Below are positions 19,811-23,109 of a DNA stretch of 64,000 nucleotides, in pieces; the first letter of the stretch is position 1; every line of letters starts with the position of its first letter. The notes under the pieces were generated by a model. The model was not told the DNA's origin. It saw nothing but the letters and a program-made list of their open reading frames with translations, and searched no databases. The DNA is taken from contig OZ116698.1 in the NCBI GenBank assembly GCA_964199315.1, positions 21,328,001-21,392,000 on the forward strand. The letters are read 5' to 3'. Both the position numbers and the translations under genes were made by a program. This DNA is from Orbicella franksi (Eukaryota).

Positions 19811-21171
19811 TTACACTTATTTGGATTAATTCAATTTGTTTTCATTTTCTGCGAGACTGTTTTCAAGGTGACCTCAAAACAGGCTAATTTGCCTTGGGAG
19901 ACTGACATTTAGCAGTAAATGTCCGACGCTGCCAAGGCACAGCTTTTTATTCCAACAAGCTGAATGTTTTACATGCAAAAGTTTCACTTTTCTTCGTTAT
20001 TTTAAAGGTTTAACAATTATATTCTGTCAACGTTTGACGGAGTTATGATTTTTTTAAAATACCTCCTGCCGAACTCCAGAATGTGCGAAGCGTAAAATAC
20101 CAAAAGTTAAAATGTGGGACCTGATCTACAAGTCTATGATGACTCAAAAGTAATACTATCAATGTAAAAATGTATAGAATAAAATTTGTGGGCGCTCGCC
20201 ACTGCGCGCCGTACAGAGCTCCACGAATTTGCCAAATACTCGCCATTTTGATGATAAACAAAGATAACGACGGTCGTACCTGTAACCAATATACGTAATG
20301 CGCAAATGCTTGGAAATAAAATAACCACGACAACAGGTCAAATTGTGGATTTTAAAAAAGATTTTCCTCGCTTTAGCCGTTGTTTTGCGAAAAATCTACC
20401 TTCATTCGGCTTTTTAAATAGTACAAACGATGATTACCTTCCCACCATCGATATGCAAATTACTGTAGTCGGATGAGTCTGTTTTGCTATGGGTCGACCG
20501 ACTACTACATTAAACAGCCCTCTGTAAATATACGTTCTAGGGAAATATTTGCTCTCTTACCTGAAAGAAAAAATATCCACTCCGCCTCTCAGTAAAGCTT
20601 TCCTTTACGTCTGGAAGCTTCTTTCATTTCCACGTTGCGGTAACGCAATGCCAAAACTTCACTTGTTCGTTTCACTTACATGAATGAAGACGAGATTTTG
20701 TCCAAACCCTTCTCCTCATTTTTTTTTTTTTTGAAATTCAAATGAAGCACGGGCCCTTGCAACCCCTTTAACCCCACCAGCAATGTCACTGACGGACATA
20801 ATTCTCCCTTAAAACTGATCAACGCAACAACACGGGGAAATTCAAACCTGGCTGACGGTAAATTATACCCATCTTGCCATGTCTTGCCATGTCATGCTTG
20901 TATCCAACAGGTAAAGATTTCCAAAAGTACAGATCTTAATTGGAGGTCATTTTGTTTTATTTGAGAAAGATTTAAAAATGGATATCAAAAACACTCTATA
21001 ATTCAAGCAAGGTTCACAGCACGTATTCCAAAGCAAGTTTGGGCTGTCAATAAAAACTACTTATACCCATCTTGCCATGTCTTTTTTCATATTTAAGCCG
21101 ATCTTTATTAGCTTGTATCCAACTACATTTCATGTAAATATAGGTACCGTTAAAATTGCTGCCCAATACAA

Positions 21172-21266
21172 GGAGTCTTCCTGTAGCCCAGTGGTTACAT
21201 TTCCGAGCTTCGGTTCGGAAGGGCATGGCGTTCAGACCCCCGGAGAGGGACTCCGCCTTTTTTTTT
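21172..21266 (+). ncRNA. Candidate Pol III small RNA, vault-RNA-like, copy 1
   Basis: GGAGTC...GACTCC terminal stem; A box TAGCCCAGTGGTTAC; 8-bp hairpin TTCCGAGC-TTCG-GTTCGGAA; B-like GTTCAGACCCCCGG; T9 terminator; TATA at -33. Confidence 0.5.
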
Positions 21267-21648
21267 CTTACATTTCTGTTGGGCTTCTTTTATGTTTCAT
21301 CGTACAATCTTCCTTTTTTCCATTTTGAATCAAGTTAGGTGTTAAAGAAACCATTCAATGAGGAAATAAAACCTGACTGACAGTAAATTACACCCATCTT
21401 ATCATGTCTTTTTTCATTTAAGATGCTCTTTATTAGCTTATATCCAACAGGTAAAGATTTCCAGAAGTACTGATCTTAATTAGGAGGTCATTTTTTTTTT
21501 TAATTGGAAAAGATTTGATAATGGATATCAAAAAATCTCTATAATTTAAGCAAGGTTCACACCACGTATTCCAAAGCAAGGTTGGGCTGTCAATAAAAAC
21601 TGCTTTTGATTTGCATATAGGTACCGTTAAATTTGCTACCCAATTCAA

Positions 21649-21744
21649 GGAGTACCCCTGTAGCCCAGTGGTTACATTTCCGAGCTTCGGTTCGAAAGGG
21701 CATGGCGTTCAGCACCCCGCAAAGGGACTCCGCATTTTTTTTTT
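21649..21744 (+). ncRNA. Candidate Pol III small RNA, vault-RNA-like, copy 2
   Basis: Same layout as copy 1, 477 bp downstream; GGAGT/ACTCC stem, intact A box, TATA at -33, T10 terminator. Confidence 0.48.
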
Positions 21745-22124
21745 CTATTTCTGTTGGATTTCTTTTATGTTTTATCGTACAATCTTCTTTTTTTTTCCAT
21801 TTTCAATCAATTTAGGTGTTAAAAGAACCTTTCAATAAAAAAATCAAACCTGGCTGATCGTAAACTATACCCATCTTTCCATTTCTTTTCTCATTTAAGC
21901 CGCTCTTTATTAGCTTGTATCCAACTGGCAAATATTTCCAAATGTACAGATCTTAATTGGGAGGTCATTTTATTTTTTATTGGGAAAGATTTAATAACGG
22001 ATATCAAAAAAACTCTAGAACTTATGCAAGGTTCACAGCACGTATTCCAAAGCAAGTTTGGGCTGTCAATAAGAACTACTTTTTATGTGCATGTAAACAT
22101 CGTTTAATTTCGTACCCAATTCAA

Positions 22125-22218
22125 GGAGACCCCTGTAGCCCAGTGATTACATTTCCGAGCTTTGGTTGCAAAGGGCATGGCGTTCAGCCTCTCCGCATAG
22201 CGAGTCCGCATTTTTTTT
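22125..22218 (+). pseudogene. Degenerate copy 3 of the vault-RNA-like gene
   Basis: A box mutated (CAGTGATTAC), UUCG loop and hairpin broken (TTTG, GTTGCAAA), upstream TATA lost, terminal stem weakened. Confidence 0.45.
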
Positions 22219-22901
22219 ATATTTCTGTTGGACTTCTTTTATGTTTTATCGTACAATCTTCTTTTTTTCCATTTTAAATCAAGTTAGGTGTTTAAAGAAC
22301 CTTTCAATAAGGACATCAAACCTAGCTGACCGTAAATTATACCAATCTTTCCATGTCTTTTTCATTTAAGCCGCTCTTTATTAGCTTGTATCCAACAGGT
22401 AAAGATTTCCAAAAGTACAGATCTTAATTGGAGGTCATTTTGTTTTATTTGAGAAAGATTTAAAAATGGATATCAAAAACACTCTATAACTCAAGTAAGG
22501 TTCACGGCACGTATTCCAAAGCAAGTTTGGGCTGTCAATAAAAACTACTTATACCCATCTTGCCATGTCTTTTTTCATATTTAAGCCGATCTTTATTAGC
22601 TTGTATCCAACTACATTTCATGTAAAGGCTGAGAGTAAATTATATCCATCTTATCATGTCTTTTTTCATTTGAGGTCGCTCTTTATTAACTTGCATCCAA
22701 CGGCAAAGATTTTCAAAAGTACCGATCTTAATAAGGAGGTCATTTTTTTTTTTTTATTGGGGAAAGATTTAATAAAGGATATCAAAAAACTCTGTAACTT
22801 AAGCAAGGTTCACAGCACGTATTCCAAAGCAAGTTTGTGCTGTCAATAAAAACTACATTTGATGTGCATATAGGTAGCGTTAAATTTGCTATCCAATTCA
22901 A

Positions 22902-22995
22902 GGAGTGCCCCTGTAGCCCAGTGGTTACATTTCCGAGCTTCGGTTTGGAAGGGCATGGCGTTCAGCCCCCCGCAGAGTGACTCCAAAATTTTTTT
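22902..22995 (+). ncRNA. Candidate Pol III small RNA, vault-RNA-like, copy 4
   Basis: Intact A box, UUCG hairpin with a G-U-compatible change, GGGC/GCCC third stem, TATA at -33, T7 terminator. Confidence 0.48.
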
Positions 22996-23109
22996 CATTT
23001 TTTTTTTTGTCTTGAACGGTATTTTCGTTTTGTTTTGAAAAGATTAAATAATAGACTTAAAAAACTCTATAACTGATGCAATATCTGTCATTTTTTCATA
23101 GCACATTTC

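Follow-up and report, generated by a model that had tools for sequence, protein, structure and literature searches.

A tandemly arrayed, tRNA-derived family of candidate Pol III small-RNA genes in reef corals

The array and its gene-like units

The window analysed here is a 64,000-nucleotide stretch of Orbicella franksi DNA. Its forward strand carries a tandem array composed of four units that bear an ~83-nt core and of one partial unit that lacks it; the coordinates of the features are given in Table 1. Tandem Repeats Finder (TRF) describes the array as 3.0 copies of a 477-bp period, with 86% matches, over positions 21121-22550. Alignment of the unit classes found in this genome indicates that the ~477-bp units are those of a 290-bp class enlarged by a spacer insertion of ~190 bp. 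The initial annotation had reported four ~83-nt cores in ~477-bp tandem units, and TRF, reading of the sequence and alignment of the copies all agree with it. The cluster of four units which it described is thus real, but it forms a single small array within a very large family and is not an isolated group of genes.

Table 1. Features of the array in the window (core nucleotides are numbered from the first base of the core)
Feature	Position	Strand	Basis	Remarks
Tandem array	20843..23060	+	TRF, sequence reading, class alignment	Four core-bearing units and one core-less partial unit
Promoter block, copy 1	begins 21139		Alignment	TATA at 21139-21142
Core copy 1	21172..21254	+	Sequence reading, copy alignment	All gene features intact
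A box, copy 1	21184..21194	+	Exact match to TRGCNNAGTGG	TAGCCCAGTGG, core nt 13-23; recurs at 21661, 22137 (mutated) and 22914
B-like box (T-arm remnant), copy 1	21227..21237	+	Sequence reading, copy variation, ARAGORN	GGCGTTCAG(A/C)C, core nt 56-66
T9 run, copy 1	21258..21266	+	Sequence reading	3 nt past the terminal stem; Pol III terminator-like
Proximal promoter block, copy 2	21616..21635	+	Alignment	TATA at 21616-21619 (-33..-30), then GGTACCGTTAAATTT
Core copy 2	21649..21731	+	Sequence reading, copy alignment	Intact
T10 run, copy 2	21735-21744	+	Sequence reading	
Core copy 3	22125..22207	+	Sequence reading, fold, copy alignment	Degenerate
T8 run, copy 3	22211-22218	+	Sequence reading	
Core-less partial unit	22330..22640	+	Sequence reading	Duplicate of the 20843-21140 spacer plus a rearranged promoter segment
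Promoter block, copy 4	begins 22869		Alignment	TATA at 22869-22872
Core copy 4	22902..22984	+	Sequence reading, alignment	Intact
T7 run, copy 4	22989-22995	+	Sequence reading	

The four cores are of unequal quality. In copy 1, C7 and C8 are replaced by U, so that pairing in the terminal stem is retained in the form of G·U pairs. Copy 2 shows a single mismatch to the family consensus within nt 11-63, and copy 4 is, of the four, the closest to that consensus (95.7%). Copy 3 has suffered an indel, its A box shows a G-to-A change and its 3' part is scrambled; it has lost its TATA and its fold has a z-score of -0.32. It is probably a pseudogene. The 778-bp gap which separates copies 3 and 4 is there because the core-less partial unit lies between them. 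Thus, with its three intact copies and its dead one, the array of the window is a minor one in a family of ~400 members. Outside the array, weak matches to miRNA families at 23497-23621 stem from a neighbouring palindromic repeat.

The individual elements listed by the initial annotation were all found: the TATA at -33 to -30 in copies 1, 2 and 4 (confirmed by alignment of the copies), the GGAGT/ACTCC terminal stem, the A box, the 7-bp hairpin with its CAGT loop, the 8-bp hairpin capped by UUCG, the GTTCAG box, and T-runs of 9, 10, 8 and 7 residues in copies 1 to 4, respectively. The TATA together with the adjacent GGTACCGTTAAATTT constitutes the only upstream block that is retained in all three coral taxa compared. 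The A box varies by 5% at most across 267 copies. The B-like box has kept the GTTC of the tRNA T-loop but departs from the consensus GGTTCGANNCC, a point on which the annotation had rightly urged caution. A run of at least four T follows the terminal stem in all three taxa, where each intact unit possesses A box, B-like box, TATA block and T-run. One upstream element sets the family apart from the four U6 and three tRNA-Sec genes of this genome: the PSE core CCACAAG, present in the latter at about -66 to -57, is absent there from the family, the only loose PSE look-alike upstream of the family cores being ~14 nt further out.

The core was called neither by ARAGORN at its default threshold nor by the Rfam models for tRNA and tRNA-Sec. 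With the threshold relaxed to 90%, ARAGORN gave each of three subfamily consensus sequences the same cloverleaf, in which the loop has 6 nt and the anticodon cannot be assigned; it called none of 1000 dinucleotide shuffles (0/1000). Because of these relaxed calls and of their absence from the shuffles, we place the core outside the canonical tRNAs but within tRNA ancestry: judged from its sequence, it is a degenerate tRNA, and the earlier remark that it looks tRNA-like was well founded. The cloverleaf has an anticodon loop of 6 or 8 nt, a D stem that is unpaired in the tRNA register, a C·C mismatch in the T stem and a G at position 58. A conserved 5-bp clamp between leader and trailer (GGAGU/ACUCC) lengthens the 7-bp acceptor stem into a 12-bp panhandle. 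An origin from tRNA-Sec was considered, since the core has a long D stem, a D loop of 4 nt and a CUUCG loop, with a TATA upstream, but it was rejected: real tRNA-Sec genes share neither sequence nor PSE with the family.

Copies of the consensus type have fold z-scores ranging from -3.7 to -6.7. Pair 9-75 of the panhandle is C·A in this genome, C-G in the coral represented by the OF* contigs and U-A in the coral represented by Ga0126343; that complementarity was restored by a different route in each of the latter two points to a constraint at the RNA level. With RNAalifold and pair-count controls, one compensated pair only was seen, which is not significant relative to shuffles. Transitions that preserve pairing outnumber their strand-symmetric disrupting counterparts (196 versus 116), and among changes overall those that break stems outnumber those that preserve them (503 versus 347).

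Size, conservation and transcription of the family

A 25-mer from the core gave at least 379 matches in the genome with up to two mismatches, versus 0 for the reversed control, which puts the array pattern far outside what chance would give; for an 18-mer taken from the 3' half of the core, the matches numbered 244, versus 3 for its control. The family consists of about 400 copies, arranged head-to-tail in dozens of arrays on several chromosomes, with units of ~290, ~480-510 and ~680 bp. From 11 arrays, 85 distinct copies were retrieved. Many copies are imperfect: all feature checks were passed by only 33 of the 116 copies sampled in this genome. The lone 'single' copy examined turned out to be a fragment of an array, 1.5 units long. 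One ~4.7-kb repeat recurs in the neighbourhood of the arrays, with a copy at a distance of 5-21 kb from 9 of the 16.

Searches beyond the genome gave no name to the family. No credible Rfam family was found at the gathering threshold or at E<=10 in the window, in one consensus copy or in eight further arrays, with models that included Vault, tRNA, tRNA-Sec, Y RNA and hammerhead among others. A scan of a prokaryotic genome collection with a core 20-mer returned no match, and literature searches on the sequence and on coral tRNA-like tandem repeats returned no description.

Evolution is far slower in the core and the proximal promoter block than in the spacers, whether one looks within arrays, between arrays or across corals. 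When array classes are compared with one another, core nt 11-63 are 96% identical, whereas identity is 86% in the segment from -60 to -21 and 70% in the spacer. Within arrays, the fraction of copies that differ per site is 0.026-0.027 in the core, 0.067-0.090 in the segment from -150 to -61 and 0.15-0.18 in the T-rich spacer. The initial annotation had proposed this comparison of cores with spacers as a check, and the cores came out as far the better conserved.

Its sequence matches show the family to be present, almost unchanged, in several reef corals. It was found on 69 coral-metagenome contigs, which were retrieved with an exact core 25-mer, so that identity over that particular stretch is imposed by the search. 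Some of these contigs are 97-99% identical to this genome. In the OF* contigs and Ga0126343 the flanks are 79% identical or unalignable, and yet the cores are identical over nt 1-64. One array present in another coral is absent from the nearest locus of this genome.

The locus is transcribed in poly(A) RNA-seq, although the depth may instead mirror the copy number of the repeat. Exact contigs of the window array, 134-435 nt long, were recovered with word depths of 143-617 from poly(A) data; the four runs used were poly(A) or random-primed and resolve neither transcript ends nor strand. Coverage of the upstream segment from -83 to -8 equals that of the core in depth, and it extends to the spacers. 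Since promoter and spacer are covered, what these data reflect is transcription across whole arrays, or else the copy number of the repeat, rather than a Pol III product. A related organism contributed 10 million raw poly(A) reads, of which only 5 belonged to the family.

Explanations for the family

We consider it probable that these arrays constitute a coral-lineage family of Pol III-type small-RNA genes which descend from a tRNA, the discrete RNA itself being a prediction. The initial annotation had offered a choice between a vault RNA cluster and a new Pol III RNA family. The second term is supported as a gene model, given the TATA and its adjacent block, the A box, the B-like box and the T-run in three coral taxa, and cores that are conserved far better than the spacers; the first is not, in that the cores receive no Rfam Vault score and ~400 copies in satellite-like arrays do not resemble known vault RNA loci. 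Under the gene model, the internal A box (+13 to +23) and B-like box (+56 to +66) would be recognised in the manner of TFIIIC targets, in cooperation with the upstream TATA (-33) and its adjacent block. Transcription would start at the first G of GGAGU or close by, and the run of 4 to 10 T straight after the terminal stem would end it. From these elements we infer Pol III initiation and termination and a discrete, U-tailed RNA of ~85-90 nt. This RNA would fold into the 12-bp panhandle, i.e. the old acceptor stem plus the clamp, enclosing a remodelled D arm, a T-arm remnant and, where the anticodon arm used to be, a very stable hairpin capped by UUCG; it could no longer serve as a decoding tRNA. 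Arrays would arise, rearrange and decay, while selection would preserve the core and the proximal promoter. What such an RNA might do is a guess: it could be an abundant scaffold or decoy within a ribonucleoprotein. The more daring proposal of an abundant RNA, common to reef corals, that the host would employ as the RNA partner of a conserved ribonucleoprotein, and in its boldest form of an anthozoan vault RNA or Ro/TROVE-bound RNA independently recruited from a tRNA gene, is a long shot.

The arrays could also be an inert or selfish satellite of tRNA derivation, homogenised at the DNA level and spread by unequal crossing-over, by segmental duplication or by carriage on a larger repeat. The core would then be a fossil that yields no discrete functional RNA or, at most, a TFIIIC-binding or boundary element acting as DNA. 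The three unit-length classes, the core-less and rearranged units and the many decayed copies are compatible with such a satellite, as are the non-significant covariation test, the array that another coral has and the nearest locus here lacks, and an RNA-seq depth that follows copy number and takes in promoter and spacer; the recurrent ~4.7-kb repeat suggests spread by duplication of blocks. A neutral unit should however diverge evenly, and this is not what the gradient of identity between core and spacer shows: inside arrays the core changes ~3-fold more slowly, and corals with unalignable flanks have an identical core. The panhandle pair restored in two ways argues in the same direction, and so does the retention of the T-run and the TATA block where the remaining upstream sequence has been replaced. 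Altogether, we hold a mere satellite to be unlikely.

The family could be the anthozoan vault RNA, that is, the non-coding part of vault particles, bound via TEP1 and MVP. Its architecture resembles that of vertebrate vault RNA genes: a TATA lies upstream, the A box is followed by GGTTAC, a B-like box stands close to the 3' end, and there are a panhandle and a T-run. The genome encodes MVP (C12:15.86 Mb) and a TROVE-domain protein (C1:16.43 Mb), and the Rfam model detects no vault RNA in the genome at all, which leaves a coral vault RNA, if there is one, without another candidate. The shared motifs belong nevertheless to the general stock of Pol III/tRNA promoter elements, and the core derives from a tRNA; A box, panhandle and T-run do not discriminate, because they are common to tRNA-derived genes generally. 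The known vertebrate vault RNA loci have a handful of genes, to be set against ~400 copies in dozens of arrays. The Vault covariance model (RF00006) matched no core at E<=10, neither over positions 20000-24000 of the window nor in 116 nt around a consensus copy, and nothing in the whole genome reached its gathering threshold of 34 bits. The best match in the genome (C10:26.28 Mb, 22.3 bits) is an unrelated locus, rejected as a candidate for its many non-standard pairs and its lack of a T-run. The same model reportedly detects Vault RNA in the hydrozoan Hydractinia (PMC11067881), and its silence here therefore counts against a vault identity, which we find very unlikely.

Two further explanations scarcely survive. 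That of a tRNA-derived SINE, or of tandemised SINE heads, spread by retroposition, can point to the tRNA-related head with A and B boxes, to the high copy number and to a reverse-transcriptase fragment 1 kb downstream, but is highly improbable: the copies lie head-to-tail in arrays and not scattered genome-wide, the distribution that the initial annotation had set against its own proposal; every copy has 60-150 bp of conserved upstream promoter that a retroposed Pol III transcript would be without; and the sequences read show no body, tail or target-site duplications. Ordinary decoding tRNA genes, as arrayed in Hydractinia and Nematostella, are hardly credible in spite of the cloverleaf-like shape, the exact A box and the tandem tRNA arrays known from cnidarians (PMC11067881), in view of the silence of default ARAGORN and of the Rfam tRNA and tRNA-Sec models, of the aberrant anticodon loop, D stem, T stem and G58, and of the conserved clamp on the acceptor helix.

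If the predicted RNA is made, the corals have a Pol III RNA of high copy number and strong conservation that lies outside every RNA-family library, and that annotation and small-RNA studies now file under unclassified repeats or tRNA-fragment noise. It would be a clean example of how a tRNA gene becomes a new structured RNA that is amplified in arrays, in parallel to rodent 4.5SH and Xenopus OAX, and a concrete candidate partner for the cnidarian vault and Ro proteins. To our knowledge, the RNA partners of these proteins are mostly unknown. If it is not made, the family is a satellite with an internally constrained segment, useful as a marker and with a bearing on the persistence of tDNA-like elements.

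Comparison with known systems

Non-coding RNA genes of cnidarians are often found in tandem arrays (PMC11067881). Those of Hydractinia and Nematostella are made of canonical tRNAs, snRNAs and rRNAs (PMC11067881), whereas the coral core matches no Rfam family. Coral hammerhead retrozymes, tandem repeats of ~200-300 nt that yield circRNAs (PMC7229834), have in common with the family that they are short, transcribed tandem repeats of a coral genome; they differ from it by their ribozyme, since Rfam detected neither a hammerhead nor another ribozyme motif in the array of the window and in eight further ones.

The U6 and tRNA-Sec genes of this genome resemble the family by a TATA at about -32 and a T-run terminator, and tRNA-Sec also by a D-type stem of unusual length whose loop has 4 nt; instead of their PSE, the family has its conserved block just 3' of the TATA. 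With Vault RNA (RF00006) the coral core shares a size of ~85-100 nt, the A box then GGTTAC near the 5' end, the B-like box near the 3' end, the terminal panhandle, the upstream TATA and the T-run. It differs by the lack of a covariance-model score, by being recognisable as a degenerate tRNA and by its copy number, ~400 versus a few.

Xenopus satellite 1/OAX and mouse 4.5SH are Pol III-transcribed tandem small-RNA gene families or satellites, and the ancestor of 4.5SH is 7SL/B1. The coral family differs from them by its tRNA ancestor, by its short units (290-680 bp) distributed over dozens of arrays on several chromosomes, by a core that is near-identical across coral taxa, and by a discrete RNA that is, here, a prediction. 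Like them, it is a lineage-restricted family in which intact and decayed copies are mixed, and it is made of hundreds of head-to-tail units, each of which has a complete Pol III-type gene, internal promoter and terminator included, that derives from an older Pol III gene.

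The window array and its family in the genome

The features listed in the initial annotation for the four cores (TATA, A box, hairpins, GTTCAG box, ends and T-runs) were all found by reading and aligning the sequence (see table), and Tandem Repeats Finder gave a 477-bp period (3.0 copies, 86% matches) at 21121-22550. Copies 1, 2 and 4 passed all feature checks. Copy 3 has lost its TATA, carries an indel and a changed A box, and folds no better than shuffles (z -0.32). The copy 1 promoter is rearranged upstream of about -45, and a core-less partial unit separates copies 3 and 4. 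The window array is a minor one: three of its copies are intact and one is dead.

Coordinates of the features (plain numbers are window positions, negative numbers count upstream of core nt 1; G000, assembly of the window's own genome; C, contigs; L, individual loci or metagenome contigs)
Feature	Position	Strand	Basis or remark
Core copy 1	21172-21254	+	sequence reading and alignment; T-run of 9
Core copy 2	21649-21731	+	sequence reading and alignment; T-run of 10
Core copy 3	22125-22207	+	sequence reading and alignment; T-run of 8
Core copy 4	22902-22984	+	sequence reading and alignment; T-run of 7
TATA	-33 to -30		copies 1, 2, 4
A box TAGCCCAGTGG			window array cores
7-bp hairpin, CAGT loop			window array cores
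8-bp hairpin, UUCG-closed			window array cores
GTTCAG box			window array cores
GGAGT/ACTCC	core ends		window array
tRNA-Ser, anticodon TGA	10345-10419	-	Rfam, 42.4 bits
tRNA, anticodon CTA	58644-58720	-	ARAGORN label 'Pyl'; Rfam, 47.8 bits
Palindromic tandem, 16-nt unit CGCGAAAATTAAATGA	23497-23621		forms a long hairpin
150-aa open frame	24054-24506	-	weak RVT_1 match, E 3e-4, below Pfam cut-off
tRNA-Sec gene L040	G000:C1:6579642		79-81 bits (all three genes)
tRNA-Sec gene L041	G000:C1:8761667
tRNA-Sec gene L042	G000:C12:2091930
tRNA-Sec-model clusters	G000:C2:25147829-25169876; G000:C12:21186275-21238052		~36-50 bits (47-bit cut-off), 81-83 nt
~4.7-kb repeat	L078:180-4832; e.g. G000:C1:22281936-22285818		no long open frame
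~300-bp dispersed repeat	L068:3898-4206		SINE- or MITE-like
Deletion-derived unit	L067:2441; L082:518		another coral's metagenome contigs

With the core as query, the window's own 497-Mb assembly yielded 433 first-look candidates. A core 25-mer had 379 matches there at up to two mismatches versus 0 for the reversed control, and an 18-mer from the 3' half had 244 versus 3. Dozens of arrays on contigs C1, C2, C11 and C7 hold the copies in head-to-tail order; some have more than 25 exactly spaced copies, and the units fall into three classes of ~290, ~480-510 and ~680 bp: the window's ~480-bp unit is the 290-bp unit with a ~190-bp spacer segment, and the 680-bp unit has a further insertion of ~190 bp. 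No Rfam family was found in any of eight additional arrays, and 33 of the 116 copies sampled from this genome pass all feature checks. The window array belongs to a coral-lineage, tRNA-derived family of ~400 small-RNA genes, predicted to be of Pol III type.

Of 16 arrays compared in position, 9 have a copy of a ~4.7-kb repeat (copies ~80% alike) at a distance of 5-21 kb; a copy also lies ~500 bp from the array in another coral's contig, and none is near the window's own array. The arrays may have spread within a larger duplicated block or element. Within the window, the palindromic tandem matched several miRNA-precursor families, below threshold only (best mir-2767, 38 bits versus a 69-bit cut-off) and is probably a small inverted-repeat element; the open frame ~1 kb downstream of the array is, judging by its weak reverse-transcriptase match, a retroelement remnant.

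A tRNA-like core with an added upstream element

The caution that the overall length is also tRNA-like proved well founded. Core nt 6-12 and 72-78 pair as a 7-bp acceptor stem, nt 13-23 fit the A-box consensus (tRNA positions 8-19), nt 55-71 make up a GUUC-bearing T arm and the variable loop has five nucleotides; the consensus sequences of three subfamilies all gave exactly that cloverleaf in ARAGORN at a 90% threshold, against 0 of 1000 dinucleotide shuffles. A working tRNA was rejected: default ARAGORN and the Rfam tRNA and tRNA-Sec models were silent on the core, its anticodon loop is 6 or 8 nt long, its D stem is unpaired in the tRNA register and its T stem holds a C·C mismatch. By its sequence the core is a degenerate tRNA. 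Five extra nucleotides per end (GGAGU/ACUCC) extend the acceptor helix to a 12-bp panhandle, and consensus-type copies fold with z from -3.7 to -6.7.

This coral's external Pol III promoter is defined by four U6 and three tRNA-Sec genes, which share a PSE (core CCACAAG at about -66 to -57; GTACCACAAG at about -66 in each tRNA-Sec gene) together with a TATA near -32. Of these two elements the family carries the TATA alone: CCACAAG is absent at the PSE distance, and a loose look-alike, CCAA(T/A)GCAAG, lies ~14 nt further upstream. A U6-type gene was rejected for this reason, and the family gene resembles a tRNA-type unit, with its promoter inside, to which a TATA-proximal element has been added.

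Other tRNA-related matches were noted. The dense tRNA-Sec-model clusters on C2 and C12 probably consist of arrayed tRNAs with long variable arms (Ser/Leu type), which agrees with the tandem tRNA arrays reported from other cnidarians. The window's tRNA with anticodon CTA would decode amber; mutation of a tRNA gene or carriage by a repeat may account for it.

Evidence for constraint across arrays and corals

Between array classes, mean pairwise identity was 96% in core nt 11-63, 90% over the whole core, 86% at -60 to -21, 65% at -100 to -61 and 70% in aligned spacer columns. Within two long arrays, the per-site fraction of copies departing from the array consensus was 0.026-0.027 in core nt 11-63, 0.045-0.061 at -60 to -1, 0.067-0.090 at -150 to -61 and 0.15-0.18 in the T-rich spacer.

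An exact core 25-mer retrieved 69 coral-metagenome contigs, in which that stretch is ascertained and the remaining 58 nt of the core are not. Those of sets Ga0126338, Ga0126339 and Ga0099805 are 97-99% identical to this genome's arrays, the window's own included. Other corals are the source of sets OF* and Ga0126343, whose flanks match this genome at 79% or via dispersed repeats only; their cores equal the consensus over nt 1-64 without a difference (the 25-mer part being ascertained by the search). In all three taxa the sole upstream part kept is the TATA with GGTACCGTTAAATTT (-34 to -15), even where the sequence of a unit has been replaced beyond -40, and the stem is always followed by T4 or more. 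One deletion-derived unit, with the promoter fused directly to the core's 3' third, occurs in two independent samples, so that it is a fixed or common variant in that coral. The ~300-bp dispersed repeat occurs in this genome as well as in the diverged coral of set Ga0126343 (2884 first-look candidates, ~85% identity, on nearly every G000 contig).

Panhandle pair 9-75 is C·A in this genome's main class, C-G in ~28% of its copies and in 14/14 OF* copies, and U-A in the main Ga0126343 copies, which reads as one mismatch repaired two ways. It is the only compensated pair, and covariation was not significant against shuffles (doubly changed cell count matched in 80/500, covariation score in 63/500) because the sequences are too alike. 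Among 230 unique cores, pairing-keeping transitions outnumbered their strand-symmetric disrupting counterparts (196 versus 116, counts that are not independent events). Stem-breaking variants exceeded preserving ones overall (503 versus 347), a balance consistent with a family where many copies decay.

Transcription and relation to known RNAs

Of the array's sampled words, 55-67% were present in four poly(A) RNA-seq runs from a single study, and contigs of 134-435 nt were identical to the window array, spacers included, at a word depth of 143-617. This is too high for DNA carry-over from a 497-Mb genome: the window locus is transcribed. The conserved part was 100-300 times deeper, and depth over -83 to -8 equalled that over the core, so that depth tracks family copy number rather than the limits of the predicted 85-nt RNA; the contigs are uninformative on transcript ends and strand. 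In a related organism, 5 of 10 million raw poly(A) reads matched.

The initial annotation had proposed a vault RNA cluster or a new Pol III RNA family. The former gained no support, the Vault model having no match on the cores at E<=10 in 4-kb and 116-nt searches (its genome-wide best, 22.3 bits at a locus elsewhere, is unconvincing), and tRNA ancestry explains the resemblance as generic Pol III elements. Since MVP and a TROVE-domain gene are present, this coral must either have an RNA partner for vault or Ro or have lost it, and the family is a long-shot candidate for it; in Hydractinia, a Vault RNA is reported to have been found with Rfam (PMC11067881). The latter reading holds as a predicted gene model, with a conserved core, a TATA-proximal block and a T-run. 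No description of the family was found in the searchable literature. Its closest known kind is, we presume, the Pol III-transcribed tandem small-RNA gene family, such as Xenopus OAX/satellite 1 and mouse 4.5SH. The array layout is ordinary for the phylum, since many cnidarian ncRNA genes lie in tandem arrays according to the Hydractinia study (PMC11067881).
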